NCBI GenBank assembly: GCA_964035545.1
Contig: OZ037770.1
Location: 9,864,973-9,928,972 of the forward strand
Direction: 5' to 3'
From: Bugula neritina
Taxonomy: Eukaryota > Animalia > Bryozoa
Length of the DNA: 64,000 bases
In this document: in pieces, positions 104 through 59,600 of the stretch
How the letters are laid out: each line of letters opens with the position of its first letter
Numbering within the stretch: position 1 is the stretch's first letter
The notes under the pieces: generated by a model
Seen by the model: only the letters and a program-made list of their open reading frames with translations
What the model was told of the DNA's origin: nothing
The model's database searches: none
Translations under genes and position numbers: made by a program

Positions 104-3028
<2,925 letters not shown>

Positions 3029-7555: not shown

Positions 7556-7561
7556 CACCGG

Positions 7562-15991: not shown

Positions 15992-35218
<19,227 letters not shown>

Positions 35219-35254
35219 TACAGGCTCAAGTACTGTTTGGCACAGCGAATCATA

Positions 35255-35360
35255 GTTATATAATTATATTTGTTATATAATTATATTTGTTATATAATTA
35301 TATTTGTGATATAATCATACATTGGTTATATAATTATATTTGTTATATAATTATATTTGT
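35255..35360 (+). repeat. 17 bp tandem repeat (gttatataattatattt) in the 3' UTR of ABCC copy 2
   Basis: About 6 units here versus one at ~3067-3083 in copy 1. Confidence 0.9.
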
Positions 35361-35663
35361 ATACCAGGTTATGAGACTACAGTCAGACTATAACTGTATA
35401 TTCTCAGGTCAGCGACTGTACAGTAAATAAAGTATTATATTATATATTCATTTATGCTGTCGGAGATAAAAAAGCTACACTATTTTTACTAGTGTTGGCC
35501 TGTTTATACATTTGATCAGTTTTATGATTGCATAATATAGGTTGTCAAAATTATAGAATAATATTAATAAACAATAATATTTTTAGCACAAGCATGTGTT
35601 GCTTGCAATAAGTAGAAACAAGCATAAAGCTTTATATTATTGTTTTTTTTTTCATCAATATAT

Positions 35664-38600
35664 GTGACCTCCCACCACAAAACAGGGAACGTTGGTCAGT
35701 TTTTCAAAATTGAGTTATTAGTACAGAGTTAAAGAGCAGATCTTTGCAATCATTTTGCAATTTGTTTGAAGTCTCTAGTGCAAATAGAACTCGAGATATT
35801 GATATTCAAAAGCCTTGGCGTTTTTAAAACAGTCAATTTACGTTTTTGAGAAATTCGCTTTTAAAGTAAGGAGGTCTGGAATAATTTATGGATTATTTGT
35901 TTACATTTGTCAAGCCTTAGCAACGGGCCTTTTTATTCTAGCAAACTGGACAAATTTGGTATCAAAACATTTGTTTAAGTATGGGCTTTCAGCTCAACCA
36001 GTTTTTACGTTTCCTAAACAAAATATTAGGTCAAAGATGGCCGCCAAACTTGTTGTAACCTTATTTTCCCGAATAGCTATTAAATTGTGATAACAGTTGA
36101 AAATTTTGCTACTTTCAGCACATATAAGGACCTTTAAGCACTTTTTTGCACCGACATTCATTTGAACCAACTATGCTAACTAGGTGTCGTATGAAACAAA
36201 ATGGCAGCCATTTCCTGTTTTACGTTTGCTATTTCCCTCATTATTAATATCTCATGTAACATGTCCAACTGTAGCTATTGAGCCATGCCATTCGATAGTA
36301 TCAATTGTTTAGTGCGTAAAAATCATATGAGAGAATCATTCAATTATTAAAATATTATACAAAATTTATTCAGTCATACAGTTACAATGTAGAGTGATCA
36401 AAAGTTACACATAGGGAATCAGTTGAGATATTGAGTATCCATACAAGAAAATGAGGTATACGTTATTTTTAATCTTCAAATCAATTATTATAAACAGATA
36501 AAAGTGTAGAAATTCAGCATAAATGAAACTTAAATTAATTCATATAGCAGAAAGACTGCTTAGGTGGTTCGTATGGTCTCTGAATCTATGTCCTTGTTCT
36601 TCATAGCGTGAGTTTACAGAGTATAAGCACATAACCAAGAGCTTAATTGCTGCTACAAACGATATTCCAGTAGTCAAAGTTAATAGATGCTGCTACTATA
36701 AATCTACCCTGTTCATCTATAGCCACTTAGACCTGCAATGATAATATTAAACTTATTTTTAGATTATAAAAGAGAACAATAGTGCATTAGAAATTAAATC
36801 TGGCTATAAAATGCAATTGTTTTAACACCATTTAACTACTATATTACAGCAGCTAATAATTATTGAGCAATTTCTCAACATTTAAGTTCATAGCGAGTTT
36901 GAAGGCACATTTGCAAACTAGTTATTTATAAAATTTTTGAGCATAATGAAATACTAGACACCTTTTTTCGAGTAAAGTTAGCAGAAGCTATAAGCTTGCA
37001 AGCGGTAGCTCTCCAAATGCAGGGAGTCCGGATCACAAGTGTAAGAATGATAGGTTATATGCAGCATGCTCTTGAGCTGTATAAGTGACATAACAAACAG
37101 CACCTCATCGACAAGTTCCATCATGTTGCCCTCACATCTTCACTTTCCTAAAATGGAAATAATGTTATATTCCTGAATAATAATCATGATGTAGTAATAA
37201 TAATTTTTTTTTTCCTATTGCCATCAAAAATTAAGTCATTTAAATACTTAGCATGTTTGAATCTGTAGTACTAAAGCAATGAGCTTGTATTTGAAAAATA
37301 AAACAACTAACTAATCAATATACTATTTAACATTCAATTAAAAGTGAGTAGACAGAGCTAGCCAAGTAGCAACAAAACCTACTAAATATAGCTACTGCAA
37401 AACCAATTTAAATTCAATTATTTACTTAAATATAAATAAATCAGCATAAGTAGTTGTAGTACTCCAATTCTATTTTGAAACTGGAAAGTCTTGCATGATA
37501 AAAGTGATGTATTCTAATAGTCATAGATAACTATAAGATTTAAACTAAGGGTAGCTGTAAGTGTTAGGCTGACAATGACTAACAACAAGTGACTTGATTT
37601 TGACATCATTATTATTGTTTCACTCTTAAAGATCTTAATCACTGTTATTATGAATATTATTATTATACTTGAACTTATTCAAATTGAATCACATTCGATA
37701 TTTCAGTATGAGTATAGATTATATTAAATATTCATATTCAAAATAAAAGTGGCGCTCCGCTGACTGTGGACCACTTAACATGCCCAGACTTAAAATTTCT
37801 ATAAATAATCAATATGAAAATGAACATTTAATACTATGAACTTCAAGTTAATGATAATAATAATATAATATTCAATAAGATTATCACAAGAACTAACTGA
37901 AAGAATTACTAATAGTATTAGTGTAATACTGAACCCTATTTAATAGTATTATCAATGTGAGTATGAGCATTTAATTTTGAATGAAAATAAAACACTCAAT
38001 ACTAAAAATTTCAAGTTAAAAATATCATCTTTTTAGCATCAGCTGTTAAAAATGAAAGTCAAGAAAGCATTTGACCTACATAGGCTAGAGTAAATCACTA
38101 AATCAAAATGAAAATGTAATACTATTATTATTTATTAATACAAATAACTTAATAAGCATATAACTCGGGTTGATTATGATATTTTAATCATGATTATTAA
38201 TAATAATATTATTATTAAATTCAACAACTACAACATTTGAAGTAGAAGTATAACTTTAACTATAAGTATAAGTTAATAACTACTAGTAAATTATATAATT
38301 ATTTAGTAGCGTAAATGAGCTATTTTCAGTATAATCACCTGCTTTGTAGTGATTTAATCATAAAGTCCAAAGATAAAGATCAATATTAAACTACAGCTAA
38401 GGAAATTACTTGCGTTAAAAGCTAACTTAATCTTTGCAGCCAGCGCCAAAAGTAGCTAATACTAAACTTAGTTTCAGAAGTAGGCTTCCTATCATGCGAG
38501 GAGAATGCAAGAGCTACCTTTGTTAAACAAAAAATTATTTGTAGGATTTCGCGCTATGAAATGTTTTAATTTCATTTTCGTAATAGTAATGATAACTCCG

Positions 38601-38860
38601 AGTCTACTTGACTACGATCCGCCATTTTGAAGAAATATTTAATGCATAGTTACCAACTTTAGAGTTAATTTTGAGCTTGAAGGAATTGGCAAATGCTTGC
38701 GAAAATATGATATTTGAAATCCTTGAGTTTTTTTGTATAAGAAAAGTTTAAAATTTAAAAACTGGCAAACAATTTCAATTTTTGGTTTTTCAAAATTTAA
38801 CCTTCATTTACTACACTTCATGAATGCCGCCAAGTTCCCGGTTTTGTCGTGAGGGGTCAC
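35664..38860 (-). mobile_element. 3.2 kb non-autonomous TIR DNA element, copy A
   Basis: Imperfect 27 bp TIRs GTGACCTCCCACCACAAAACAGGGAAC / GTTCCCGGTTTTGTCGTGAGGGGTCAC, with ATAT on both sides (or a TA TSD if the ends are TGTGAC). The empty site atcaatatatttgc is present in the paralogous flank at ~3373-3386. No transposase ORF. Confidence 0.92.
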
Positions 38861-41527
38861 ATATTTGCTATTTCTACCAGCTGCTCATTGCTCATTTTAT
38901 TTAAATACTATCATGGTTTAGTTATAAACTTTAAAGAGATGTTTATACAAATAACATTTATGGTTTTTTGAAACTGCCTTAAAGAACAGAGGAATTGTTG
39001 AAAACAACATATCAAGTGTAAGTGGTGGTTGCTCTTCTTTTAAACTATCGACTATACAGCAGTGCTTCCACACCAGGTTCACATTCAGGCTACACTTTTA
39101 AGTCGCATGCATTTCTATCATGCAAAGGACAATTAGACAGGGCATTTATTTGAAATTGAAGTGGTGGGAACACTTTACTGCACTAGTGGCTGGAAGATGG
39201 AATAGTTATGAAAGTTACGGTAACTGAGGAAAGGGAGATCTGAGACATTTGTGTTATAACTTCACTTTTACACTAGTCACTTTTTATTGATCAACAGCGC
39301 AAGTCACTAGATAGCAACTCAGTCGATGGCCACAAGTCCATTAGCAGTGGTTATAGCTAGTCACTTACTTGTAGAATGGCAGGAATGGCCACCTTAAATT
39401 TGCGTGAGCTTTTTACTTGTAGAAGGGCATGTGCTTTATTTACCATATGAGTTACCTATTGTTGATGCTGTATTGGGAGTGAAAGCAATTGACATGATCA
39501 TCATGATTGTGTTTGTTGACAAAATCAAAGATTGATTTCTAATTGTGTTTAAACTTTAAACACTTTTTTGCTAACATCAGCATAAAATAGAATTGATGAA
39601 TGAAGCAGAAGTGATATACTCGTCAGAATTTATTAAAATTCCAGAGTTATCATACTCCTGTATTTTCATGCGCGTCAAACCAGATAGTTACCAGACAGAC
39701 TGTTTTTTGCAGATATTAGTCTATAAACAGCCTCTATTTCGGGGTTACTGACTGCAGTAACCCGCAAATCTCTAGTTCAGACTTCAGAGGTTTTTATGAA
39801 GCATAAACTTGAGAATCTCAAACTACACTCAATCACCCCCAACGTCAAGCTGCTTATAAAACAATTCGTCTAGGCGGGTTAAAGGGCAAATATAGTAACA
39901 TGCTGCTGGCGCCCTCCTAAATCATTAAAAATAAATATTAATAAGCTTATTAGAAAAATTGGGATTGTTGGGTTATATATTTGTTGTTGTTTTATATGGT
40001 TCTATAAACACCAAGATAGTGATTAGTTTATTTTCTTTAGTTTCATTTATTTTCACCAAGTACAACTGTAAAACTCACTAAAAGTAAAAGTGAAACAGTG
40101 AGTGTGACTCAGACTTATAATGTTAATAATATTAATAATTATTATCAATTAGTATTACTCATTTACTGGTAGTGATACTATTGTTTATTACTATTACTAT
40201 TAGTGTTAGTGCTAGTATTAGTAATAGTATTGGAATTACTAGCTTGAGCATACTTTTACTGTTTTATTTTTAAGTTAACTTTTACTTTTAGTTTTACACA
40301 GTCTCATTATAATTATTATCATTAATTGTGATAATGATAATTATAATTGATAATACTAATACTAATAGTAATACAGTAATAGTAATACTTAATCATAATG
40401 TCAATGATCATGAGGATCATTATCATTATCATTATGATTAGCATTAATATCAATATCATCATGATGATGATAATGATTTATACTTGATCATCATCAATTT
40501 CAATTTGAATTCTTAACATTGACTTATAGTAACACTAACAGTACTACTATTAGTATTAGTATTACATTTACTATTAGTATTATCAGTATTAGTAACACTA
40601 AGTTTTAGTCTACCCGAGTCTTGAATTGAAATTAATTATTTAATATAATAATAATAATAATTATAAATTTATATAACTAATAACTATAAGTATAACCAAA
40701 AACTTTAAGTTTAACTTTAAGCGAGTATTGATTTAGTGATTAGTCATTAGTGATTACTTTAAGTGTAACAATTCACCGATTTAGTGATTCGATTATTGTT
40801 ATAAATATCATGATGATAATGGTTATACTTTTCCTATAGGCTATATTATGTTTATAAGAGTTATATAGTTAGACTTATACTAATTATAAATTGATATTAA
40901 CTATAACATTGACTATGGGAGTAAGTTATATTAAATATAGTTGATGTTATACACAAACGATTAGAAATCCCAAATAATTTCAGCACATACTTGCACAAAA
41001 TGCATTATAAAACAAAATTGTTTAGGCATACAACCTTAAAACAGTATGTAGATGAAAACTAATATACATATAAGAATATTTTAATACTGCATAATTGAAG
41101 TGTGTCACGGATTCTTGACGGCCTTCACGTAGAAAGTTTATTCTATGCCTGTCATTAAGGTTGCTGTCCAAATTCACAATACTGGCCATCACAACGATAA
41201 GTATAATGACGCAGGTGACTCATCATGTAAATAATTATGTTGAATTCAAAATGGTTCAAATGTGGCTTCTTTCTTTGTTTTATTCAAAGATGTTGTTGCT
41301 GAGGTATTTTCAAAAAGCTGCTGACCCTAGCAAATAGTTTTACCAATTGACTCTTCATATCTATTTATATAATTTGTATCCTGGACACATTTTATGATTA
41401 GATAAGCGTCATTCTTACATTTGATGGATTGAGTATTTTTAGAACTGCTTTTTTCTCATTGCCATGTCTATTTTTATTTCAACTTAACCTTGTTTATTTG
41501 TTGAAACTATTTGATGATAATGAATAA

Positions 41528-41870
41528 GCCTAGGGCCACACTGTGCGTATTTTCGCATGCGAAAATTAAAATCACAAGTAGCAAAGGTGTCCACTGTAGT
41601 GTCATTGATGCGTGATAAATAAAGCTTTCATTTTTAAATCGCACTCGCTTTCAATAAAACGCAATTTACTGGAATAAAGCACTAAACAAAGAAATTGAGC
41701 TCGCTGAATAGCTACCAGCCAATTAGGTGACGACGACAGAGACGATTCGCACTTGCGTTGAAAATGCAGAGCGACAAGTGCGACGGTTTTCTCAACGCGC
41801 ACAGTGGACACCTTTGCTACTTGTGATTTCAATTTTCGCATGCGAAAATACGCACCGTGTGGCCCTAGGC
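41528..41870. mobile_element. 343 bp MITE with ~70 bp near-perfect TIRs (PIF/Harbinger Tourist-like)
   Basis: gcctagggccacactgtgcgtattttcgcatgcgaaaatt...ccactgt is mirrored at the right end; TAA on both flanks. Confidence 0.9.
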
Positions 41871-42077
41871 TAATGAATTAATCTCTCAGAGATATAAACT
41901 AATTTCTTCAAAAGATTTATTTTTTTATATCTGGTATCTTTAGAAGATATGTTTCATTGCCGGAGCAAAGATGCTCAATTGTAAGCCTACTAATAATTTA
42001 CAATGTTAACATGTGCTGTTTTTATCCTCATAGACTGTAGCCCTGATATTTTGTTTTTGCAGTGGACATAGAAGAAT

Positions 42078-45000
42078 ATGGATGCTGAAATATTTTTAGC
42101 AGAGAAGCTTCAACCTCATAAGTTGAAAATGCTCTATCCTACCAATAATTTGTATCAGAACAAGTTGAATCTGACCAATCATCTAATAGGTAAGTTTAGT
42201 TTTTTAACTGTCATCCTTATATAATCGATGGCAGTTATATAACTTACCATTCCCTATTTGTTTTGTTTGTAAATAAGTTTGACCGCTTTACAGCTCAACT
42301 ATAATGCACTTACTAAATTTTGTTTTTGTCCAAGTGTTAGCTTATTAGTATGCAAAGTTTATGTCTTCAGTTGTTATGGAATTCCATATACTTTAAATGA
42401 TTAAAACCAAGTTCTTTTTACTATATATAGTAAATGTAAATTTACATTTTAGTGAATCAGTATACTGCCTTGTGCCAATTTTTAATCCCATTTTCGTATT
42501 AAGTTCTGATTATGATCGCTTCAGAAACCTTATTGGTTGACGAGATGGAGTGGGAAGGGAATGCTGCCGTGGGCGAAACAGCGTTTTGGCTCAAGATTTT
42601 GAGTGTGCCAGCAACTTCTGAACTTAGACGCTTGAAACTGGATTTTAAAAGAGAGGTTTATAAGATTTGGAATGAGAAGCTGTCATGTAAGGTAACTGTT
42701 ATCATATTCATCTTTGAACTATCTGCGATGAGAGGAGGAGGGATACCTTCAGTTTTTTCCTCATAGCTTCTAATGGTGCTGAAGAATACTTCTGTTTAAA
42801 CCTGTCCACATACAATGCCCTTTTTAACATTTCAAATGCTGGTAGAAAAGGCATTGCATTTTGTCATTTATGAAATGAAAAGCATACTCACTGAGCTGTC
42901 TATCGTCTATGTTAATCAACTTACCAACTCAAGTTACTACTAGTACTATGTAAAACTCCAACTTTTCTTTTTGAGTTGTTGGCAACTTACTACCCTGTGA
43001 TTCACGGGGTTTTCTTGCATGATAATAGACACAAACGTACATGCTAATTTTTGTTACCATTTTGTTTTTAGCTTCAGAAAGAGGTTGGCGATAAAGTAAC
43101 TCCTACAAACATTGAATCACCAGAAGGTAATGGGGTTCATTGTTCTAGTAAGTGCGGTATAAAATAGACAATAGCTTCGAAATATTGTGTTGTATATAAG
43201 TTTTTTGAAAATGCACAGAGGGCTAGATTTTAAGAGTGTGGTGAAGCTAACCATGTAGGGAGCAGCTGTGGTCTAGGGGTTAAGGCATTTGCCTAGTAAA
43301 CACGAGGTCATGGGTTCGAGCCGAATAAAGGCCATTAGTGATGTTAGGAAGAGCATCTAGTCATAATTGTTCTCTTCCCCATCTAAATAAGTCCTTAGTC
43401 CAATTTAACAAAAACCCTTTCTATTAGGGGTTTCTTACAGTGATAGCGACTATAAACTGGCGTGAGTGAAGCTAACCATGTCAAAATTTTATTTGTGATA
43501 TAATTTTATTCTTTATTATGAAAAATTACAGAATCTGCTCTTAAAGCTTGTCAATGTTTGTCTATTATTTGTTTAATACTAGTTTATTATCCTCTTAGCT
43601 ATATATAACCTAGCATCAAGAAGATACTCTCTATTGCTATAGCGACTTGCAACAGAAAGTACTGCAAATTGTGAAGTTTTATAGGCGGCCATCTTACTTT
43701 ACAATATAGATTGTAATGGCATTTTAGAATGGCCAATTTAGTTTCAATGTCCAGCATTTGTTAGACATCCTTGGCATGAAGCAATGACCTCTAATTAGCT
43801 AGTTGCTTATTTGCTTATACGATGGCTCAAGGTTTTTTTACGAGGTGATGCAGTCTAACCTAGCGATAGTTCTTATCGTGTCATCTGGTATATTAACCAC
43901 CATGGCAGACTGAACATTACTATCAACTGAAATATTACTACTGAAGTAACCCATGTTGCTGAGCTTTACAAATCTGAGTGATATTTTACAGGCACACCTC
44001 AGGAACACCAGTCATTAACCAACCAGTTTCAGTTAGATGTCCCAGATCTTGGCAATTCTCCAGAGAGACAGCAAGTCAAAGTCATCAACCCTGAAGGAGG
44101 TAAGAAAATGAATGGAGAACAGAGTATGGTACACTTTATAAGTTAGTTGACTTTTTGTTTCTCGTAGGAGAAGAATTCAGTTGTAGAGCCTAGTGGATAA
44201 ACAAGATTTACTTTATTTTATTTGACCTGGATTTGTCGTGTACTCATTGCTCATAAATTGTTGTCAAAGGGCAGATAACTGAACTGGACATTGCTTGCTA
44301 ATTTTTGCCATAATGACAAACTTTTGATAATTGCAAGCCGTGTTTTATAATTCCAGTAATTGAAGGCAACATTTTAATGAAAATATTTTAAATTTTCATG
44401 CCTTTAACTAAACGACACATTGCCAATAGCTTAATTAATACCGTGATTGTGTTGGAACATACAGATTGCTTATGTTGTAAAATTTTGCCTGATTAATTCA
44501 CAATTTTTGTCCAAGGAATAAACTCCTGTATCACATCAGGGTTGTTTGTCTTATTTTGTAGGTGAGAAAATTATTGAAATTCAGCCAGCAGAAGTGATTA
44601 ACTTTGAGGATCTGGAAATGTCTACAAATGAAACTGAAAGTCAGCAGGCAGCGGCAGTCATATGTGATACAGACAGCACCAGCAGCGTTGTAGCCACTCC
44701 TCTTCCCAGAATGCATTGTACGACGGAGAAACCGAGTCCAGCTAAGAGAAAGTCTCATCTGGTCAAAGCTGATGTGGAAAAATTAAAACTCATGAAATGC
44801 AGCCACTGCTCTTTTACTGGTGTAACATTGAACGATGTGGCCGTCCACAAATTTTCTGCGCACCAGGATATATATGTGATCCCATGCCCTTATCCCAACT
44901 GCCATTACCGGGCTAGACAAAAGAACATAATAAAGGTTCATATTGAGTCACGGCACACTAAGGAGAAAAGATTCAAGTGTTCAGTATGTAATGCATCTTT

Positions 45001-46285
45001 TAAGACACTCATGGTTGCCAAAAAGCATTACCGATCGAGACATGAGAACGAGAAACTAACTTGTGAATTGTGCGATTTTCAGTGCGATATATTTAAACAG
45101 AAATTAAAGAACATGCACATGGCGGAAGTTCACAACGATATGTCTAAGGTATTCAAATGCCAAGATTGCGAGTTTTATGGTAGCTCTAGAAGCATACTCG
45201 CTGCTCACATTCACGCTAAGCACACCGCGAGTTATGACTCTAAAGTCGCGTATCATTGTGGGAAAGGGCTGTGCGAGTATGCCAATTTTATTGAGGAGTT
45301 TGTCATTCAACATCGCAGACATTGTGATGGCCGGGCCAAACACCTGAGCTTGGCGTGCAAGAAGAAAAAATCAATTAGAAACAGAAATCATCTTATCAGC
45401 AAGTTTTGGTGCAGCGTGTGTGGAGGACTTTTTGTAACAAAGTATTCTGTTGAAACTCATATTGCCAAGTCACATGATAGTCAAGGTCACCCAGTCCCTA
45501 CTAACAGCGATAAACCAGGAAAGATGGAGTTCAAGTGTTCAGTGTGCGCTAAACCGTCGGCAGATAAACATGTAATCGACAAGCACATAACTGACGCGCA
45601 TGCGGAGAGTGGTGAATGTGTGGGAACATACTTGGAGGATAAGAACTACGTTCCTGAGCTAATTCGATGCAAGTATTGTGATTTCACCTCAAAGTTGTTG
45701 TGCGCAATGAAGTCTCATGTACGGGCTCGTCATACTCATGCTATCTACAAGTGTGATGTCTGTGATTTCACCACTAATTCCAAAAATGGTATTGCTACCC
45801 ATAAGACAAGTGCGCATCTTAAAAAGGCACTCCGGATAAAAATTTCTATGAACAATAAACCTTCAGCTACTAGCACTGACATTGTCCCACTTTCCCAACC
45901 AAATGGAGTGATACATGATGATCTTAGTCAAAGTGGTAACGAATCTGTAGCACACGAGAATCTCCCTGTAGCACATGCGAATCTTCCCGTAGCACACGAG
46001 AATCTCCCTGTAGCACACGAGACTCTTCCTGTAACACACGATAATCTCTCTGTAGCACACGAGAATCTCTCTGGAGCACACGAGAATCTTCCTGTAGCAC
46101 ACGAGAATCTCCCTGTAGCACACGAGAATCTCCCTGTAGCAATTGATCCGGTTGCAGTTGAAGAAGTGAATAGCGAAGATATAGTAGTTGTTGGTCAAAG
46201 TTTAGCTGCTTCTCATATGGATACCACCATGTTTGTTGTTGGAAATAGTGAATTTCCTGTTGAGGGGGAAGTTATTATTTCGTAG
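42078..46285 (+). CDS. Multi-C2H2 zinc-finger protein, 5 coding exons, ~728 aa
   Basis: Exons 42078-42189, 42504-42691, 43072-43126, 43992-44099 and 44562-46285 join in phase (2187 nt). The last exon has about ten CxxC...HxxxxH fingers (e.g. FKCSVCNASFKTLMVAKKHYRSRH). The 5' exons rest on splice signals and phase only. Confidence 0.85.
43257..43465 (+). mobile_element. Full-length tRNA-derived SINE with a 16 bp TSD
   Basis: A box tggtctaggggtta, B box ggttcgagcc. Perfect TSD gtgaagctaaccatgt at 43241-43256 and 43466-43481. Confidence 0.9.
45947..46141 (+). repeat. Coding 21 bp minisatellite (VAHENLP x ~9)
   Basis: gtagcacacgagaatctccct units in frame within the zinc-finger last exon. Confidence 0.95.
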
Positions 46286-47295
46286 TGGGCCCTGTTTACT
46301 TTTTTAGCTGTTTCTTTCGAAAATGTTGGCCTAAAAATTTTACATGTTATAACCCGTCCCCCATCATGTAGGTGCATGGAGAATTTCGTATACTGTTGCT
46401 AGAATTTACTTTTATTATATATGAGAGTTGATGGTCTCTTTTAAAATTTTAATATGTTTTTTGTTTCATAAGAAACTCATGACTCCCTAATCTAACTTTA
46501 TGTGCAACACCTGACAAAAGCATTAGTTTCTTTGCTAGAAATAAACTTGTAGTGATGTCAACATTTCAAACATTAGCAACATGTACATGTAATGCAACTT
46601 ATAACTTTTTACTGCAAAACTGTTTGTTAAAATGCAATTTGCGATCACATATATTATACATTATAAAGTTATATACAACTGCATGCACACCTACTCATCA
46701 GTAAATGATCTGAACCTAGGTAATATCATACTGTATAGTCAATATTCCTAATGTCACTAAGTAACTAGAACCTACAAATGGAAAAGCAAAATTTCTTATC
46801 ACAGATTTATTCATATGATATAAGGGTGTCCATATAATCGCAACCAAAAGGATAGAAGGCTGGCTACTATAACTGCCATTACAGAATTGAACTTGACTTG
46901 CCAAAAAAGTAATTTTATACCTTCACAAATCCTTGGCCTGTCGATTAACTGCTTGATCTTAGAGAGTTGTCTTTCAAAAACACTTGAAAATATGACCACA
47001 TGACCAAATTAGACGCGATCCTGCATCGACAAAAGGGTGCCCGACGTGTTTTGAATACTACTGATAGCAGTGTGTAATTTTAAAACTAACAGACATGTTA
47101 TTATTTTCACCACGTCGTAGAACACAGGCTAGGAGAACATCAAAACAACTATCCAGTAATCGGCACGTATTTCATTTTGGGGTATCAGTTTTAATAGTTA
47201 ATTCTTATAGTATTATAAAGTAAATTAAAATGTAATCCCATAGCCAAGTAACCTTCTGTCGTTGCACTGTAGATTTGCATATATAGCATAAAAAT

Positions 47296-50200
47296 ATGGC
47301 ATTGTCAACGCAGAAGTCCACCACAAGTTTCATTGAAGAAATCGACTATAATGAATTAGAAATTGGACAGGTATCAATTAGACTTAGTTAAACTTATTAG
47401 AATTATTCCATCGTTTCCATGCTCGTAGTCATACTCAGACTGAGACTCCTAGTGATACTCATACTCATAGTCATACTGAGTCGTATGCTCATAGTAAATC
47501 TCAATGTCATTTGATACACTTACAGCGATACGCAGTACAGAGTACTCATACTTGCGCTGATCATGGTGGTGGTATTAATTAAGAATAAGTGGCGCAGTTA
47601 TAGTGATATACCTATCCCACATTGACATAATCATAATGCTATTGATAGTCATAAAGATATCGACAATGATAATTGATAACATGAAAATTAAGTTTAACCG
47701 TAACATAACGTCATATTTTAATTTGATAATCATAATTATAAATTATTATAAGAAATTTTAATTATATTTCATCATTATAATATTCAAACATCATAAACTT
47801 AAGCATTAAGATAATCACAATAAAATTGAAATAAAATAATAATAAACTAAAAATAACAAAAATGAATTTATTAGAACAAATGAAATTGAAAGTATTATTG
47901 ATTTAATCCACATGAATGTTGAACTGAAAGTAAAAGTATTAATAATTGACCTATATAAAATGCTACCAGTATTTCTATGAGGATGACTAAGACTATCAGT
48001 TTGGCTTTGTCTTTAACTATTGAAGAATTCATCTTCACAGTCAATGTCATAAATGATTATGATAATAGTCTGTAAGACTTAATATAAGTATTAGTATATA
48101 TATGCTATTGCCATTGTAGGTCATATTTGATTTTAATTTATAAATATAATTATATAGGACATAGGTATTGTAACAGTAACAGCAATGATTAATATAGTAT
48201 TTTCAAAATAATGATGTTGATCAGCAATCTAGCAACTTCAACCTGGTAGTTAATTAGGTAAAATTGAGTGTCAGTTACATTTATACTCTGGTAGAATCAA
48301 ATTATTTTTTTCAAGACTTATGGCAGACCATCACCATTGTTACAATAAAACCTAACTAATCAAATGTTCTTTTTTACAAATTTTTGAATTCAAAATAATA
48401 AGTGTAGGTGTTAAAGTGCTAATAGTGATAAGTAGTATGCAAAATTGCTACAAATGCATAGTGACAGCTGATTCACATTACCATTAGATCAATGCTATGA
48501 TTATGATTAGCCTTTGTCAATGGTGAAAAGTTAATGTTGAAAGTCAAGTATTGTTAAGTCTAATAGCATTAGTAATATGAATACTATTAGTTGTAAAATA
48601 TATTTTCAATTTCCTAGGTGGTGGGAAAAGGAGCATTTGGAGTTGTGCAAAAAGCAATATGGCGGGGCATGACTGTAGCCATCAAACAGACAGAAACTGA
48701 AAATGAGAAGAGAGCTTTTGTCACAGAGTTGAAGCAGTTGTCTAGAGTTAGTCATGAAAATATCATTAAACTTTATGGCAAGTATCTCTATTTTAACTTC
48801 CTATTCTTAAATATCAATAGCTTGCTTAGAGTAGCCAGGCAATCGATATCAAGTTTGTAGTTTTAATGCAATTGCTATTGCTCGTGCAAAACCTAGCCCA
48901 GTATTTCTCTATGTATGTATGAGGCTCATGTTAACTGACTTACAGGAGCTTCAACGAAATACCCGGCGTTTTTAATGATGGAGTTTGCCGAGTGTGGTTC
49001 ATTGTATAATCTGCTCCATGGTCCTGAACCAATGACTGCTTATGAAGCAGCTCATGCCATTAGTTGGACTTTGCAGACAGCTCTCGGTGTAGCTTATTTA
49101 CACAACATGAAACCCAAGGCTATAATTCACAGAGATCTTAAGCCTCCCAAGTAAGTTTCTATCAAATCTAAACCATGAACCTTGAACTTAGCTGTTGGCT
49201 CATCAAATACTCACTAGAACATATCTTACTGGCTACTCCTTTTGAAAGACTTGTTTCAATCACGAGGTTGTGAAATCTAAATTGAGCATATTAGATACAA
49301 AATTATTTTTTCAGAGAAGTAATCACTTGGACACATATGTTTTTGGGTTGATTTCCTTCTCTTTTATTTTATTGCTTTTTTTACTGTTAAATAGTTTGCT
49401 TCTGGTGAAAAAAGGTATGGTTGTGAAAATCTGTGATTTTGGTACGGCAGCAGACATTCAAACACACATGACCAACAATAAGGTAAGTTCATCTCAGGTA
49501 TATACTGATAAGATGGTAGAGAACCATAGCAGCTGTAAATACACTGAACTACTACAGCTTTACATGATCAGTCTTTTCTATACAATGTAACGTATATACA
49601 GCTGCAATCAACGCAGACTTGTCACATCACTGCGATAGAGACGGTCTGGCTATTAACAACGAGCTTTCCAAAGGAACCAAATTATGTATATACTGCCACT
49701 TTTTTCTCTTTCACTTTTTCTCGACATCCTTTTCTTTTTTTGCCTTTTGTCCCTTCTTGTGTATACTGTCTCCACTATATTTTAAGTTGAGAAGTTTTGT
49801 CTTACATAACTTGTATGTAGATCTGTTGCTGTCGGTTCTAGGGCAGTGCTGCCTGGATGGCGCCCGAGGTGTTTGAAGGCAACAAGTACTCAGAGAAATG
49901 TGACGTCTTCTCGTGGGGAATTGTTCTCTGGGAGTGTCTGGCCAGACAGAAACCGTTTAATGACATTGGCGGCTCTGCTTTCCGTATCATGTGGGCTATA
50001 CACTCAGGTGATTGCATGTGTTTGTTTGTTTGATACTTTTATTCTTGTTTTGCTAAAAATTTAAATATCAAAAAATGTTACTGTTATGTACGGCGTTTTT
50101 TTTTCAAACTAGGAGTGGTTAGTAATAATATAGTTGATTATTCATGCATTGCTGTTTACTCTGCAATGACTTCTGAACCTATCAACTTTTAGTATGATTT

Positions 50201-53200
50201 GATTTATAGTTGCTAAATTCATTAGATATAAAAATATGTGCAGTGCAATTAAATTCTGACAGTTTAGGATGACACTAGTGTTTAATGATGTATATGTATG
50301 CTGTATATGTACATGTATATGTAATTATGTAAATGCTGTTGTAATCTCAATGATGCCTCTTTTAATTTTGCTCTGCTGTAGTAGTGTATCTATTTTTACA
50401 TTGGTGGTAAAGTACATGGTTTTCAAGCCTTTTAGTAATATTTACTTAATTATAATGTACAAGTAACAAATACTTAAACATACAAGTAACAAATACTTAA
50501 ACATACAAGTAAATATGTACTTGAATGTGCAAGTAATAATGTACTTGAGTATACAAGTAATAATGTACTTGAGTATACAAGTAATAATGTACTTGAGTAT
50601 ACAAGTAATAATGTACTTGAGTATACAAGTAATAATGTACTTGAGTATACAAGTAATAATGTACTTGAGTATACAAGTAATAATGTACTTGAGTATACAA
50701 GTAATAAGGTACTTGAATGTAAAAGTAATACTGACCTAAATATGAAGGTAATATTAATAGTCCTAATTGTCTAGTTGCAATGAAAAGCCTTTTCATTCCT
50801 ATTTGTAAACTTGTTGCTGATAGAGTTACATTGTGTTACAGGCACCAGACCCCCTCTGCTCAGAGGGATGCCCAAATCTCTGGAGAAATTGATGACCAGA
50901 TGCTGGAGTAAGAATCCCTCAGAGAGACCTAGCATGGACGAAGTAAGTCAACCATCTAACAGTCTTTCACATTATACTAGTTTATATCAGGTGTACTTTG
51001 TAATCATTTCTTGATGAAAAAGCTAGATAGGAACAGAGATAGCTGGTAAAGGAAGGCTAAATGTAGAGATGATGGGAAGATGTTTGATTAAACTAAATTG
51101 AAACAATGATTGTCGCACAGACAGACTGCTATGATGATGATGACCTTGTAACTAATTCTTGTACTTCATGACATCTGATGATTGTGCCAGGAAATAGCAT
51201 TAAATATAGTTATGAAACTTTTTTCTAATGTTTTTCTAATTCTTGCATTTCATGGAAGTAAATGTTTGTCCAAGAGAGTGGCATTAATTTTTTTCTGATT
51301 ATATTTGAACCCTGGTATGTATAATGTAACATAATAACAATAGTTTTTATCAACGTCGTATAAATCCTACTCCATAGTATCGTAAACTTTCACATGGTCT
51401 TTTCTGTTACAGATTGTTCGAGTAGTGAGTCAGACTATGCCATTTTACAAGGATAAGTTGTCTCCTCTCATCTTCCCCGGAACAGTGGCCAGTGATGATA
51501 ATAACACAGGCAATTCCAATGGCTCGGAATCCTTACGGATAGATGATATACTGTATAAGGACCGTAGGACGCCCAGTCCTGTGAATGTAGGGGACAGAAC
51601 CAATACTGCAAGCAGTAGCTCCACGGCTAGGAGTAACAGCAGGTCTATCAGTCATAGAGATAGCGAGGAAGTTCTGATTCCGCCTCTCCAAATTGACCCG
51701 CCCCCTGTCACTGTTGAAGAGGTCAGTTGATGTTATAGAATCCCCGACGCACTTTGTCTCTATGTAGCTTGAAAATTATCCGTGCATATCTTAGCTGTCA
51801 TCTACATACTTGTATGCTGGAATAATTTTGTTTTATGATAAATTCTGCACTCGTGTTGATGACTTTCCAGTCGACTATGAAGTCTATGGTATTATAAAAC
51901 TAATAGTAATTACTGCTAACTTTCATTGCATGCTATTTTTAGCTGAAATGGAAGTTCAAAGTTTAACTTTCAATTGTTGAGCCGTATTAGTTTTATAATA
52001 CTATAAACTCTAGAACTAACTGGAAGCTTTATTAGCATCGGCACAGGTTTCTTATAAGACAAAACGTTTTGAGTATACAACCCTCAAACAGTCTGCAAAT
52101 GATGGCTAAATGTAAATGAATATTTTGATAATGTATAAATGAAGTGTGTCAGGGACTCTTTCAGTAAATTAATTTTTGATGTCTATAGAAACGACATCAA
52201 TGTGAAGATAGCTTTGCTTTTTGCGAAATATTACAATTTTTCTGCTCTTGAATATTACACTAGGCCTAAGTCTACCGATGGACCTAATATCTAGTGCATT
52301 GATTATTAGTCGGAAGTTTGCTTTTCATGAGCTGCTTAACTGTTTCAGACTGAGAGACCAAGTATGAGGTCGGTGTCTTTTGTGTCTTCCCCCAGCCGAG
52401 ATGAAAGAGACTCGTCACCTGCAAGCACTATGATGAACCGAGCTCCGGTGACATGTGCCACACCTATAAGGGGTGTTTCTTTGGCACATACGTCCAGTGC
52501 TCCTCTAATACATACGTCATGTGCTCTTTTGTCACAAACTTCAGGTGCTTCTCCGACACATATGCCAAGTGCTCCTGTGTCACACACGTCAGGTGCTTCC
52601 CTGACACACACATCGGGTGTCACAGCTGCTATGACAGGTGCCACAGTTGCTGGGGCACCTGCCACTTGTTCCTTTGCCATTGGTACTTCACCTGTGACAA
52701 TGACAAGCTCTGCTGGAGATATGTATTCACCCCGTAACGTCATCATGAACTCCAATGCACAGGTTTGCGTCATTTTTCTTTTATGTATTTTTTTGCAAAA
52801 TAGTCTTTTTTAAAGTTTAAGCCTATTTTTTATCTATTTCATATTTTCCAATGAATACGATGCTCAGTTCAGTGATACCAATTTATGTCAAAATTTGCAA
52901 GTTGACAAATTGTATAATAAAAATACATTCTCTCAAATAAAAGCAAATAAAACTTGATTTAAATTTTTGGTAAACCTTATTTTATTACCTATAGGTTTGT
53001 ATGTCTGCTACGATATTTGTTTTTTTCTATGGCGGTCATGTGATGCAACATTAAATTTTTTCTGAGTGCTTTTCATCAGTCATAATGTGTTGTGATTATT
53101 TCTAATCAACAATTTGTCCACCCAACTATCTTAATATATGTTATATATATTATATTTATTTGGTACAGTTTTTGCTGCAGTTATTCACTTATTACAGAAG

Positions 53201-53563
53201 AGGTTTTCTGCTGATATGGAGCCGTTATTCCCACTCTTGGAAAACGTTAGCTTGGCTGATTCACGTATGTAATCTGAGTTCACTGTGTACCTTATACTGT
53301 GGTTACTGTGGAGTATAATATGTTGGTTTTATATATATGTGTGTGTGTGCGTGTGCGCGCGCGTGTGGTGTGTGCGTGTGCGCGCGTGTAGTGTGTGCGC
53401 GCGCGTGTGGTGTGTGCGTGTGCGCGCGCGTGTGGTGTGTGCGTGTGCGCGCGCGTGTGGTGTGTGCGTGTGCGCGCGTGTGGTGTGCGCGTGTGGTGTG
53501 TGCGTGTGCGCGCGTGTGGTGTGTGTGTGTGTGTGGATATATATATATATATGTGTGTGTGTG

Positions 53564-53611
<48 letters not shown>

Positions 53612-56600
53612 TATATATGTGTATATGTATATACAGTGCTGTGAAAAAGTTTAAGGACGCTTGCAGAAATTTCTATGTATCTTGTTTAATAGGCATTTCT
53701 TGTAAGTTCTTAATATTTTCCTGCAAGTTCTATATATCAAAATGACTCTTAGAGTGTGCTCTACAATTTCCACCTTATAGATTCTTTCTATTGTGATATT
53801 TTCTACCCATTTTTGGGCCAACTGCACAAGCAGCTAGGGAAGCACAACTCCTGTATTTTTATGTAGCCAAAGTTTATCGACTTATAACCACAAAAGGCTA
53901 AATAGTGAAATTTGACTTTGTGCATGGCATCATGATATCATAAAGTATGACTTCCTTTTATAATTTGAAATATGTCATTTAGTTGTGAGCTTTTACATGG
54001 TGTCCACTTGGGTGCTGCGCATAGACTAAATGAGAGCTGTAAATCTTCTTTCAGAGGCAAAGTTTGTAATAATTTTCTTGCACAAAGAAGGTTATTCAAT
54101 TAGGAAAATATCTGAAAAGGTTGGCAAAGCAAAGACAACTGTACATCAAATTATCAAGAAGTTTATGGACACTGGTAATGTAGCAGATGAACCTGAAAAT
54201 GGCCGACCAAAAATAAGCACACCCGAGATGACAAGGTTCTCATTGAGATCAGCAAGAAAGATCGCCATAAAACAAGTCTTGAGTAGGCAGGGAATAGTCA
54301 GAATCAACAGGAACACCAGCTTCGACATCCCTGATAAGGCAAGATTGCTGAGCCATGGTTTACATGGCCGCAAAGCAAGAGGAAGCCTCTACCTACGGAG
54401 AAGCAGCAATAAAGCCGATTACGGTGGGCCAGGGAGCATGGTAATTAGACAGTGAATGATTAGAAAAAAAGTAATTTTTTTCAGATGAATCCATATTTAA
54501 TGTGAACAATCATGCTGGGAACTGTTGTGTAAAAAGATACCAGTATGAGAAATATAGCCGTCAATGTATACTTACAACAATTAAGCACCCTATAATCAGT
54601 GTTTTATTCTGTGGTTTTATAACATCAAAAAGTACAGGTCGACTCAGTATTTGCTCTGGAATGACGTTAATACCCAAAAATATATAGATAATCTCAATGC
54701 TAAACTTCTTCCAATTATGAAAAGCTTTTTTTAAAATAAAATTTACATATTTCAAGATGACAATGCACCATGCCATCGGGTGAAGACTATTCAAGAGCGG
54801 ACGAAAAAGCAGAGGGTCTCAACGCTCAACTGGCCAGCACGAAGCCCTGACTTGAACCCTATAAACAAATTATGGTCAAGAATGGCTAAAATAGTCTCCT
54901 CAAAGAAGCCAACAATTGAGGTGACACTCATAGAGCCTGTAATGCATGCATAGCATCATGTCGTGACTGAAAACGAGTTGAAGAAGCTGTACGAGTCGAT
55001 GCCTCCTCACTGCCGACTTGTGATTAAGAATAAAGGCTGACCAACAAAATACTGATACTAAAATTGAGTGCACTGTATGTTGCAATGCTGCTATAAGGTG
55101 TATAACAAATCACATATAATATTTTTCTATATTTTAAGTAAAATATTCTGATGTCATACAGTACACACAAATTGTGAGAGTATCGAATAATTTCCATATA
55201 CGGATAGTATCTCATTGTTTCACCCAAATCTTTGGAGGATGTAAAAGGAGACACTTATAATTTCTATGAATAAGATAAGGAGATCGTAAAGATCATTTTG
55301 ATAGGCACCATGCCCATGGAAATGCTTTAGTTATGTCTTAAAATTAGCTAGGGACATTGCTATTATGGAAAACAGGGAAGCGTCCTTAAACTTTTTCACA
55401 GCACTGTATATATATATGTATATAGATTACAGGGAGTGTATATATAGATAGTATGTAGGGAGTGTATATATAGATAGTATGTAGGGGGTGTATGTATAGA
55501 TAGTGTATAGGGAGTGTATATATATAGATAGTATATAAGGGGTGTATATGCAGATAGTATATAAGGGGCGTATATGTGACCAGTCGCGACAAAACCGGGG
55601 ATGTGGCGGCGTTTGTAAAGTGTAGTAAATGAAGGTTTAATTTGGATATACTTAAATTTGAAATTAATTTCCAGTTTTTAGGTTTTGAACTATTCTAATA
55701 CAAAAAATCCAAGGATTTCAAAAATCATACTTTCGTAAGCATTTGATGATTCCTTCAGCTCCAAAATTGCATTTAAAGTTGGTAACTAAGGCATTCAATT
55801 TTTTAAATAGTGAAAAAATTGCGAAGTTATCAAATAAAGAAAGAAGACAATTTTAGTCATTTTCATAGCGCAAGATCTTGCAAATTTATTTTTTATCAAA
55901 TGAGTTTAGCTTACACCTCTTTCTTCGCATTGTCAGAAGCATCGTATTTAAAATCGCAGGCTAGTTTTAGTTTTTCATCGTGCTCCATCCAAAATTAACT
56001 TTTAAGTTACTGAGCTGTTTTGCCCTTTGGTGATAAAATGCTAAACTTAATCTTTATCTTCAGCGTTCAAGCTTGAAAATCACAACAATACAGGTAATTA
56101 TACTCAAAACCATCCTTTACGCTATTAACTTAGAATTGTTGCCAGGATTATTTGTAGTTATCAATTTATTAATATTCATACTATCACTAGGAGTATGTCT
56201 ATTCTTATTCTATACTACTAGTACTACTACTCAACTAGTAACTATTTAAATGACTCTCACTATGACTCACAGTTTGAGGTACGGTTACTCATAATGATAA
56301 TCATAATAAATATTATTCATGATTTACTGATACTCATACTGGTATTTGGCAGTAAAACCAAATGTAGCTCATTAATATTAATAGTATAACTATAAGTAAT
56401 AATTAATATTTAAATAATTATAAATTCACTATTTGAGTCTGACTCTGAGTTTCGCCTTCGGTCTTAAAACTTGATACTTATACTGATAGTATTATATTTA
56501 TTGATTTATTCTATAGTTTATATTTAAATTTACATTGGACTTATTTTTAGTAACTTTTAGCCTCTGTCTTAGATTTTGTGAATACAGTTACTGATTACTA

Positions 56601-59600
56601 TTACTATTACTATTAGTATTAACGTTAGGCCTACTAGTCAAACTACCGTTTTCTTTTGTGATTTTCAAATTAGCTCAAAGTTTGATTTAAAATATAATGA
56701 TAAAATCTTTATCACATTATGCAGGCTTACAGTTACTGTCAAAACTCAATTGGTAATCCTATTTATATTGATAAAAGCATCACCTATAACCAAATTGAAA
56801 TAGTAAATGTGATTAAATGTAAATGAATATAATGATGAAATATTAATGCGAGTTCATATTGGTTCTATAGTTGACTGACTTAGTTCTTTAGTAAGTTACT
56901 TTTAGTCTTATTTAGTGAGTAGTAACACTAACTGAATGCATAAATAGTCTAAACTTTTTAATTTTATTATAAAGGATGAGCAAACGTTTATTCATATTTT
57001 AAAGTAATTTATTGAATTCAAATTGATTTTATAGTAAATGTCTTTAATATATTCAGTTGCATTTAGCTAGCTTCTTTACTCAATCAAATGCCTGAGTGGT
57101 TAATAGTTATCGAAAGACATTGCTTCAAAATTGCCAATTGCAGATATGCTAGATATTCAAGTGCATAATGTGTAATTTTACTGATAATACTATGTTAATA
57201 TAGAATAATATGATATTCTGTACATTTTAGAAAGTGGGCTTATGAGAGCATTAGAGTGAAGACTTATACCTGCACAACTCTACTACCTATCAATCTAACA
57301 CTCCTAATGTAGACACTCTGAATTTTGGCTTGCAAGGTTATGGCTTCTGCTTATTTCATTCATAAAAAGGTTTGCAGTCTTTTAATGATGTGCTTAAAAA
57401 TTTTCAACAATTTTTTTAATTTAAATTGTTTTGTTTAATTCAATACATTTAAATGTTGATAAAATGCAGGATGACAATTAACTGCTGCCATAATAGTACC
57501 ACAAGAGTGTTTAACCAACTAAATTTTTATAATATAACTGCGTATAATTTCTAATCAAGCTACCGTTTTCTTTTGCTATTTAAAAAAGTCAACATTGTAC
57601 TTGCAGCTCTGGAATAGACAATAGATGGGTAGATTGGCAGAATAGATGTCAAGTAGCAGCATCTATAATTGCTAGAAAATCAGCTGATGATAGTGATAAA
57701 GCTTTTGCCACATACATGATGTTATGTGTCCATACTCTGTAAACTCATATTATGAAGACCAAGGAAGTAGAAAGATGAAAAGTGCCTTTTTTTGCAAAAA
57801 CCGCAGAAGCTACCTAATTTTCTTTTCTTGATTAGAGTTAATTCAAACATAATGGTTGTATCCAGGCTGGATTTGTTACTGCATTTAATTAGTTTTTTGA
57901 AATAATGTATTTGATGTTCTAAATGTGAATATTAATGCCTGATAAAACTCAAAAGTTCTAATCGCTGATTTTATGTTTATAATTTCAACATCAATTGCTA
58001 AATTTAGTTGCCGTTAAAGATTATAAAGATATTTATGAATGAATCTCAAATGATCTCATAATAGTCAAATAATTTTCTCATAAGTGTTCTACTCATTAAG
58101 CAATAACTATGAAACAGCACAGCTCAATAGCTGCAGTTCGATATATTACACAATATATTAGAGGAGAGGAAGATATTCAATGTATAGCAGAAAGCAGCTG
58201 CCATTTTGTTTTATATGACTTCCTGCTGACTTGGATGCCTAATTTAAATATCTCAACACACAAATTTGCTGAAACATCCTCTTCTTTGCTGGAATTGTTG
58301 AACCTTTCAATCATTGAACAAAGTAAAAAGCAAATTGACAAATAAATTAGACAAAAAGTTTGGCGGCCATATTTGACCTAATTTTTATGTTGAGGCAGCA
58401 TGAAATTGAGTTTAACAGAAAGCCCAAACTTTCACAATTATTTTGGTACCAAATTTGTCACTATTCCCATCATACAAAGACCCGTTGCTAAGGCTTGTAA
58501 ATTTTAAACAAATAATTCTCAACTTATTCTAGAGTTGCCCACTTTAAACGCGATTTTCTCAAAACAGTAATTTAGAAATTCTAAAAACTTTAAAGTTTAT
58601 AAATACTGATATCTCGAGTTCTATTTATGCTAGAGACTTCAAATAAAGTGCAAAATGTTTGAAAAAGTCTGCTCTATCACTCCATAGTAATAACTAGGTT
58701 TTCAACATTTTATATACATCCCTTGTTTTGTGGTGCCAGGTCACATATATAGATGGTACCATGAGTATATAAGGTATACATACACCATAAAATCTGGGGA
58801 CTACTGGGTGTATCTTGCGCCTGTTGGATTAACTTTATTCGTCTGCTGATTCCATTCTAACTATAATCACCAATTGCTGCAAGATTAAATCCTTTCATTA
58901 GCTGGTTTTATAGTTGGAGAAAGAAGTAAGGGTGGTCAATTATGTGCTGCCCACAATTAATATGCATGGTTTCATGGACACATAATTTGTATTATTCTAT
59001 AAATTATAATTTCTTTAAATGCACCAATAGTTTTCCCAAAGATTCAGATGAAGTTACTCATTATTTTAATTCAATATCAACACTCATCTTTAGTTCACTT
59101 AACTTTTTGATTTATGCATTTGACTCTGCTCATAGTGTGTTGAAAAATTAATATGAAATCAATATGCTTGGACATGCCACTCAGAAGCTGTATTTAGCTG
59201 ATATTCAAGATATATGTGAACAATTTAATACTAGTTACATAAAATATGTAACGTGGCAGGGATTCTTTAAATGCGCTATGTGTGACTAGGTGATACCATT
59301 TTGGGCATGTCTGTATGTCTGTCACTAAAATAAAAAATAACCTCAAGCTTTCTGATTATATAACGAAATCTAAGCAACAGAAGACCTTTAACAAATTGTA
59401 CTTGATCTGTGCTTTTATTGTCATAGCATTTTCACTTGACTGTCTTTTGTCCTTTGTCCATAACGTGGTGCATAGATGTGGATAGTGTCTTGCTTGTTAT
59501 CATAGAGGTTTTACCTGGTTGAAATCTCAACACATTAAAACTAGTATGGGATTCTACCTATCAACAACTCGAATCCTCCTTCGGTCTGAGCTTGTAGATA

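Follow-up and report, generated by a model that had tools for sequence, protein, structure and literature searches.

Two diverged subfamilies of a putatively Sola-like, non-autonomous DNA transposon family in Bugula neritina, with splice-like sites that are probably incidental

Elements A and B, which lie in a window of 64,000 nucleotides (the whole stretch of Bugula neritina DNA analysed here), probably belong to a single non-autonomous family of cut-and-paste DNA transposons that has split into two diverged subfamilies, and its splice-like sites would be incidental. Each is about 3.2 kb long, encodes no protein and is flanked by a duplicated 4-bp AWWT target, usually ATAT. Since a three-exon spliced RNA receives no support from sequence comparison, we regard both as ordinary non-autonomous elements. 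The lengths and colinearity given in the initial annotation were confirmed, the two elements lying in opposite orientations. Their extents, terminal inverted repeats (TIRs) and target-site duplications (TSDs) are as follows.

35664 to 38860, minus strand: element A, a TIR transposon of 3197 bp without a gene, A subfamily (13 full-length copies).
55576 to 58744, plus strand: element B, 3169 bp, larger B subfamily (at least 37 full-length copies).
38834 to 38860, minus strand: 5' TIR of A, GTGACC...ACAAAACCGGGAAC (31-nt arms including ATAT, 87% complementary).
35664 to 35690, minus strand: 3' TIR of A (same 31-nt arm pair, 87% complementary).
55576 to 55604, plus strand: 5' TIR of B (33-nt arms including ATAT, 82% complementary).
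58716 to 58744, plus strand: 3' TIR of B (same 33-nt arm pair, 82% complementary).
35660 to 35663, unstranded: ATAT TSD on the 3' side of A (single ATAT at the empty site).
38861 to 38864, unstranded: ATAT TSD on the 5' side of A (from flank comparison).
55572 to 55575, unstranded: ATAT TSD on the 5' side of B (B flank).
58745 to 58748, unstranded: ATAT TSD on the 3' side of B (B flank).
3379 to 3382, plus strand: empty paralogous target with one ATAT (segment about 92% identical to both A flanks).

The TIRs are imperfect (ATAT plus 27 nt in A, ATAT plus 29 nt in B) and share the start GTGACC. Window positions 3058-4134 are paralogous to the flanks of A at about 92% identity, the left flank corresponding to 3058-3382 and the right to 3379-4134, with an overlap of exactly 4 nt. 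A had been described as missing from this paralogous flank, and so it is: one ATAT is found there, against ATAT-element-ATAT at A. This comparison supports an insertion of A that postdates the duplication of its flanking DNA. All 13 A copies have identical TSDs on both sides (ATAT in eleven, AAAT in one, ATTT in one), and the 3' flanks of B copies read ATAT six times and AAAT once. With AAAT and ATTT among the TSDs, their length is fixed at 4 bp. A 2-bp WW duplication with T...A termini is improbable, as it would require coincidentally invariant A/T flanks in 13/13 copies.

The family is dispersed and has been active recently. The 13 full-length A copies are 86-100% identical, each with separate flanks and its own 4-bp duplication, and the B copies, at least 37 of them full-length among 40 candidates scored, are 89-96% identical. 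Patterns built on the ends found 139 5' ends and 155 3' ends genome-wide, mostly of B type, with control patterns giving 0; where ends could be paired, 59/70 elements measure 3124-3310 bp. Identical B elements sit within unrelated flanks (L024/L025 and L029/L030), from which it follows that the family moved very recently. The initial description of an old, recently mobile, non-autonomous family is upheld, with two diverged subfamilies, both recently mobile. What these sequences define is a young, probably still active, non-autonomous AWWT family in a lophotrochozoan genome, estimated at about 140 copies in Bugula neritina; its definition aids repeat masking, the dating of insertions and the search for an active transposase.

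The lack of coding content is consistent across several comparisons. No long ORF is common to A and B, as first reported, and the 48-codon ORF noticed in exon 2 of A is indeed broken in B; it is open in 13/13 A copies, among which its changes are mostly amino-acid changing. Six-frame translated comparison of A with B met stops in every frame of the matches and gave no coding signal, and in the conserved 3' region A/B mismatches fall about equally in the three codon phases (39/48/46), which argues that this region is not coding. When the ten longest ORFs from A and B were compared with Pfam, two matches only were returned, both under the curated cut-offs and likely due to chance. A protein-atlas look-up did not recognise a 91-aa stop-free stretch. 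Rfam gave zero matches over the whole window at the gathering threshold and, for A and B at E<=1, weak sub-threshold matches only (E 0.16-0.6). A B-type TIR pattern found no match in public metagenome contigs.

By its AWWT target the family is Sola-like. A reported hallmark of Sola1 is a 4-bp AWWT target duplication (PMC3845634), and AT-rich 4-bp duplications (ATAT, AAAT, ATTT) are reported for Sola2 (PMC3627910); the initial remark that ATAT fits the Sola1 target is borne out, and the same site is known from Sola2. Here the TSD is 4 bp long with an AWWT consensus, both being Sola features, in A copies and B 3' flanks. The Sola1_NA elements of Bombyx mori and Rhodnius prolixus (PMC3845634) likewise show 4-bp AWWT duplications, are TIR-bounded, ORF-less and trans-mobilised, and have GACC near the tip as in the A and B termini; however, they are MITEs of 250-700 bp, whereas the elements here are uniformly 3.2 kb. 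Against one published Sola1 terminus (PMC3845634), the single terminus compared, the first 11 bases differ (GGACCGTTTAT versus GTGACCAGTCG); the Repbase rule for non-autonomous elements asks that the terminal 11 nt match a known family with at most one mismatch (PMC4455052). The Sola2 DFa/PPa elements of dictyostelids have TSDs of ATAT, AAAT and ATTT, the very set found in A copies, and their families have common ends and differing interiors, as do A and B; their TIRs are short and imperfect at 12-21 bp versus 27-29 here, and they are amoebozoan elements of at least 7 kb with transposase and Fanzor genes (PMC3627910). Kolobok, which duplicates TTAA between 5'-RR...YY-3' termini and is known in lophotrochozoans including a bryozoan, shares the 4-bp duplication but was rejected, the target here being AWWT and the termini 5'-GT...AC-3' (PMC9587614). 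Tc1/mariner, with its strict TA duplication, was rejected on the AAAT and ATTT sites, where neither way of drawing the boundary places a TA at the junction.

We propose that a transposase acting in trans, from a gene at another genomic location, mobilises A and B; judged by the target site, it is probably of the Sola group. Mobilisation would need recognisable ends, and the ends (about 230-320 bp at the 5' side, about 720 bp at the 3' side) would have been kept similar for that purpose, while the AT-rich, low-complexity interior would have drifted past alignability. The regions concerned are these.

38631 to 38860, minus strand: conserved 5' subterminal region of A, presumed cis-acting (81% to B 55576-55803).
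35664 to 36372, minus strand: conserved 3' subterminal region of A, presumed cis-acting (70% to B 58036-58744).
36571 to 37510, minus strand: internal module of A with moderate conservation, at element positions 1351-2290 (from z-scores and alignment).
56960 to 57765, plus strand: homologous internal module of B (from alignment and genomic matches of its E2 and E3b blocks).

Globally A and B align at 57% identity. End similarity, first put at about 70%, reaches 81% across 230 bp at the 5' end; across 715 bp at the 3' end it is 70%. The 5' subterminal region of A scores z 25-57 against B (identity 0.78, 1 gap column), and the final 491 nt of the 3' region align without indels. The subterminal regions hold no repeated 8-mers that could serve as candidate transposase-binding sites, TGGCGG being the only recurring word. 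The internal module of A takes in exon 2 and intron 2 of the proposed transcript, the beginning of exon 3 and a block within intron 1; z is 6-16 over intron 2 and both of these exons. With z 10-13, the intron 1 block (element positions 1351-1500) equals the exon blocks in significance.

This intermediate similarity may have arisen from mosaic, recombining master copies and uneven decay rather than from selection on an RNA. Compared with young A copies, L014 is 81-89% identical at positions 201-1400 and 95-97% at 1401-2200, and L012 and L013 share changes amounting to 8.2% of exon 2 and 1.8% of intron 1. Such mosaic subfamily copies explain the patchy A/B similarity without selection. Candidates for a third diverged lineage in the junction comparison (L021, L022, L023 and L026) were 3' ends only. 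Several observations count against our explanation: (i) the internal module, 1.3-1.9 kb from either end, is still similar though the remaining interior is saturated; (ii) element length is unusually uniform; (iii) the splice bases are intact wherever they could be checked; (iv) two internal AG·GT sites are shared, as described below. The cis requirements known for most DNA transposons lie nearer the ends than 1.3-1.9 kb.

The four GT/AG junctions on which the proposed transcript was founded are present where first placed, at homologous columns of the A/B alignment (538/538, 1779/1780, 1965/1965 and 2207/2207).

38337 to 38338, minus strand: donor 1 in A, CAG·GT (B homologue 56094-56095).
37148 to 37149, minus strand: acceptor 2 in A, TTTTAG·G (B homologue AG 57229-57230).
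36960 to 36961, minus strand: donor 2 in A, AAAAAG·GT (B homologue GT 57370-57371).
36733 to 36734, minus strand: acceptor 3 in A, TTGCAG·G (B homologue AG 57605-57606).

All eight splice dinucleotide bases are intact in 13/13 A copies, and the six that can be checked are intact in 7/7 B copies; about 3.4 changes would be expected by a rough estimate and none was observed (Poisson P about 0.03). Post-insertion decay should, however, be neutral under either reading. A/B conservation crosses every one of the proposed junctions: around donor 1 it reaches some 20 nt to the upstream side and 14 nt to the downstream side, identity is 77% in the first 30 nt of intron 1, and at donor 2 similarity extends more than 40 nt inside intron 2. 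AG·GT sites common to A and B number four on the proposed strand, two of them internal, versus three on the opposite strand, which argues that the junctions are not above chance within conserved blocks. The two internal sites are the sole internal ones on the proposed strand, each then followed by a shared acceptor-like site; acceptor-like sites common to both elements number 10 on the proposed strand versus 2 on the opposite one, a difference that may come from a T-rich strand. In the reading we favour, the four GT/AG sites would be short motifs that fall by chance within conserved blocks.

Internal-deletion derivatives of the Ac/Ds type keep their ends and may also keep leader or intron sequence of the parent, with functional-looking splice sites. 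A and B resemble them in being non-autonomous with conserved ends, and may likewise derive from a parent element by deletion. The exons could accordingly be real but relics, namely non-coding leader exons and introns of a parent transposase gene whose coding part was deleted; the splice sites would then possibly still be used when a copy is transcribed, yet with no selected cargo. We consider this unlikely. It gains from the existence of long copies with the same ends, located by their coordinates, among them copies of 7.6, 8.5 and 10.7 kb. One of 7573 bp (C1:3034641-3042217) has the E2 block 1849 nt from the 5' end, versus 1726-1849 in other B copies, and normal E2-E3b spacing, and from E3b to its 3' end it is longer by about 4.3 kb; a second E2 block (C1:13889501) lies 5.76 kb from its 3' end, nearly equal to the 5.73 kb of the first. 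Element positions 2291-2475, where A and B have no similarity, are moreover the expected place of a deletion junction. However, the other long copies carry extra DNA at differing places, and the one long copy read, L017/L018 (5581 bp), owes its additional 3.1 kb solely to a non-LTR retrotransposon inserted in it, whose ORFs are for RT and endonuclease. On this ground it was rejected as the autonomous partner with the same TIRs that had been called for. The deletion architecture is also common to A and B, so the non-autonomous form would itself be old.

The initial annotation favoured a retained promoter with a spliced RNA cargo of three exons, non-coding or specifying a micropeptide, rather than a simple deletion derivative. 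Taken as a functional cargo that master copies maintain under selection, this appears distinctly improbable. The homologous, intact GT/AG sites, the significant similarity of the internal module and the ORF open in every A copy speak for it. The contrast claimed between exon blocks that keep similarity and introns that hardly align is not borne out: per alignment column, identity is 0.54 in exon 1, 0.49 in intron 1, 0.52 in exon 2, 0.64 in intron 2 and 0.55 in exon 3, so that intron 2 outscores exons 2 and 3. Exon 2 also contains 46 gap columns and differs in length by 47 nt between the two elements. The suggested test of exons against introns likewise gave no advantage to exons, intron 1 holding a conserved block and, in the L012/L013 lineage, evolving more slowly than exon 2. 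Conservation ignores the exon/intron partition, opposite-strand AG·GT sites are comparable in number, the ORF is broken in B with mostly amino-acid-changing differences among A copies, and a structured-RNA family match is absent from Rfam; promoter and cargo are both unsupported. A promoter-driven spliced ncRNA at about positions 450-2290, selected in Sola-like master copies, for example as a mobilisation regulator or small-RNA precursor, is in our view equally improbable. Were it true, its function would account for the uniform element length of 3.2 kb and for conservation of the internal module. The family would be of more than repeat-annotation interest only if the module were such an RNA, which the sequence evidence disfavours.

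Least probable of all, and very much so, is capture of a host-gene fragment with genuine host junctions, as in Pack-MULEs (transduplication), for which the GT/AG-bounded blocks are the one indication, an indirect one, and against which coding signal and Pfam matches are absent in all frames. The pattern searches tolerated 2 mismatches only, so a diverged host parent of the module would escape them. They found the E2 block in 132 genomic copies and the E3b block in 124, neither above the number of ends, and each E2 match checked among those listed sits as far from the ends of a transposon as expected.

The two elements with terminal inverted repeats (TIRs) lie in a microsatellite-rich window of ~32% G+C, drawn from a 216-Mb assembly. 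A and B, which also name the subfamilies to which they belong, are colinear and mutually inverted.

Features of elements A and B (window coordinates)
35664-38860, minus strand: element A, 3197 bp
55576-58744, plus strand: element B, 3169 bp
35653-36023 / 58385-58755: inverted arms A/B, 371 nt, 74%, without gaps
38729-38864 / 55572-55707: inverted arms A/B, 82%
38338/37147 and 36962/36732, minus strand: proposed donor/acceptor pairs in A
56094/57231 and 57369/57607, plus strand: proposed donor/acceptor pairs in B
38832 and ~36046: TGGCGG sites in A
55604 and ~58361: TGGCGG sites in B

Both elements carry imperfect TIRs (GTGACC...ACAAAAC(C/A)GGG; 27 nt in A, 29 nt in B). Global alignment gives 57% identity, with the ends at 75-80% and the interior mostly at 40-50%. 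BLAST confines strong similarity to the two ends, at 81% over 230 bp (5') and 70% over 715 bp (3'), and finds a weaker stretch of 64-66% between B positions ~1710-2196 and some A copies. This agrees with the initial annotation, which had described the pair as colinear and patchily similar.

Judged on sequence, A and B belong to an ordinary DNA transposon family, non-autonomous and recently active, that resembles Sola in its target site. The A subfamily has 13 full-length genomic copies (86-100% identity) together with broken ones, and the B subfamily at least 37 full-length copies among just 40 candidates scored. Pattern searches of the genome returned 139 5' ends and 155 3' ends, whereas control patterns had 0 matches. 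Pairing, which took in only perfectly matching ends on contigs C1-C6, yielded 70 elements; 59 of these measure 3124-3310 bp, five 5.6-18 kb and one 145 bp. This last (G000:C4:17738661-17738809), the sole miniature among the 70, consists of hardly more than two B-type ends.

The flanking 4-mer is the same on both sides of every A copy (ATAT in 11, AAAT in one, ATTT in one), so the target-site duplication is 4 bp and fits AWWT. An AWWT target is described as the hallmark of Sola1 (PMC3845634), and the earlier suggestion that ATAT fits the Sola1 target is thus borne out. The same three tetramers are those reported as Sola2 targets (PMC3627910), and Sola elements make 4-bp duplications and have highly variable termini (PMC10741241). 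Kolobok, a candidate for an 8.5-kb relative that end pairing places at C1:32139522-32148043 (8518 bp), is excluded: it targets TTAA and its termini are RR...YY (PMC9587614).

Recent mobility, also claimed initially, is upheld. The B elements of L024/L025 and L029/L030 (genomic loci carrying copies) are identical across the 2.2 kb read in each and sit in unrelated flanks, which shows that movement was very recent and implies that the genome encodes a functional transposase. Among young A copies, pairwise differences are 2-3%. The flanks of A match a paralogous segment of the window at ~92% identity (left, 3058-3382; right, 3379-4134), the two matches overlapping by exactly one ATAT. This clean empty site indicates that A inserted after the flanks had been duplicated, in line with the initial argument. 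The segmental duplication itself relates 1785-4134 to 33664-39615 (~92%), with A in one copy and the empty ATAT site in the other.

The initial annotation had further proposed that A and B share a three-exon spliced transcription unit. The four splice-like junctions do lie exactly where they were placed and occupy the same A/B alignment columns, and their dinucleotides are intact in 13/13 A copies and in 7/7 B copies covering them. The claim that exon-like blocks keep similarity while introns barely align did not hold. Identity per alignment column is 0.54 in exon 1, 0.49 in intron 1, 0.52 in exon 2, 0.64 in intron 2 and 0.55 in exon 3, making intron 2 the best-conserved piece; exon 2 (186 vs 139 nt) has 46 gap columns. 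In a shuffle-controlled profile of local similarity, an intron 1 block (element positions 1351-1500) reaches z 10-13, equal to the exon blocks, and similarity is unbroken over 1726-2250, spanning both junctions there. Conserved blocks straddle the junctions, with 14 identical bases past donor 1 and more than 40 nt of similarity into intron 2. In the sublineage of loci L012/L013, shared changes amount to 8.2% in exon 2 vs 1.8% in intron 1. The proposed strand has four shared AG|GT sites: the proposed donors, which are internal, and two more that lie within terminal conserved regions. The opposite strand has three, and a donor-acceptor pair can be drawn on it as well. Across copies, splice dinucleotides show 0 changes vs ~3.4 expected, a marginal difference on a rough estimate; the count says little because decay after insertion is neutral under both models. 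No test possible on sequence alone supports a conserved spliced transcription unit, which we regard as improbable.

Comparison of the two elements found no ORF common to A and B. In exon 2, the 48-codon ORF is broken in B and open in every A copy, where its differences are mostly amino-acid-changing. The lack of a shared ORF and the break in B match the initial description. Translated A-B matches fall in every frame, stops included, with no coding signal, and in the 3' block of 491 nt that aligns without gaps, mismatches show no codon-phase bias (39/48/46). Pfam returned just two matches, both under curated cut-offs and likely due to chance, Rfam none at gathering threshold (sub-threshold matches were weak, E 0.16-0.6) and a protein atlas look-up none. 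Exons were tested singly, by reference.

Mosaicism would be a simpler account of the patchiness. The sublineages are mosaics: the copy at L014 matches young A copies at 81-89% over 201-1400 and at 95-97% over 1401-2200, and L012/L013 show the reverse pattern near 1600-1800. Master lineages may recombine or template-switch, which would leave parts of an element with differing ages. The termini would stay conserved if mobilisation is limited to copies with recognisable ends. The least alignable part, 553-1350, is by eye apparently the most AT-rich and has many short repeats.

Long copies besides the 8.5-kb relative include one of 10674 bp (C4:21671672-21682349) and one whose end is at C1:13895284. 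Another, of 7.6 kb (C1:3034641-3042217, 7573 bp), keeps normal spacing between E2 and E3b (search blocks from the proposed exons 2 and 3) at near-usual distance from the 5' end, and carries an additional ~4.3 kb between E3b and the 3' end, an arrangement compatible with an autonomous form or with a nested insertion. L017/L018, the one long copy whose sequence was read, is an A-like copy with a nested non-LTR retrotransposon (L017 2620-4119 plus L018 1-1275; G000:C1:15878587-15881726) bearing 310-aa reverse-transcriptase-like and 330-aa endonuclease-like ORFs. A further nested insertion splits the A copy on contig C7 (L011/L020) and includes a 405-aa open frame (L020 2140-3354) resembling, by eye only, a retroelement polymerase.

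The G+C-rich hexamer TGGCGG occurs in both subfamilies at element positions 29 and ~2800 in constant orientation (~0.15 per element expected), and the internal site reads TGGCGGCCAT(C/A)TT in A and B alike; it could be a protein-binding site. Directly upstream of B lies a Tc1/mariner-like element (53613-55427) whose inverted ends measure 50 nt (53613-53662 / 55378-55427, 90% complementary); its ORF at 54030-54455 matches Sleeping Beauty-type transposase HTH domains under the curated cut-off. A 26-nt tandem repeat of six copies (55385-55596) abuts the 5' end of B, whose target ATAT is at the array end. Elsewhere, a G+C-rich block with several ORFs (5686-9258; 47-52% vs ~32% around) is probably an LTR retroelement remnant, because one ORF weakly matches a retroviral-type aspartyl protease. 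An 80-nt inverted repeat (41518-41597 / 41801-41880, 94% complementary, arms 203 nt apart) may represent a small foldback element or one of MITE type. A 579-aa open frame (44546-46285) has several C2H2 zinc-finger matches and contains a 21-nt (7-codon) tandem repeat in 10 copies (45902-46183).
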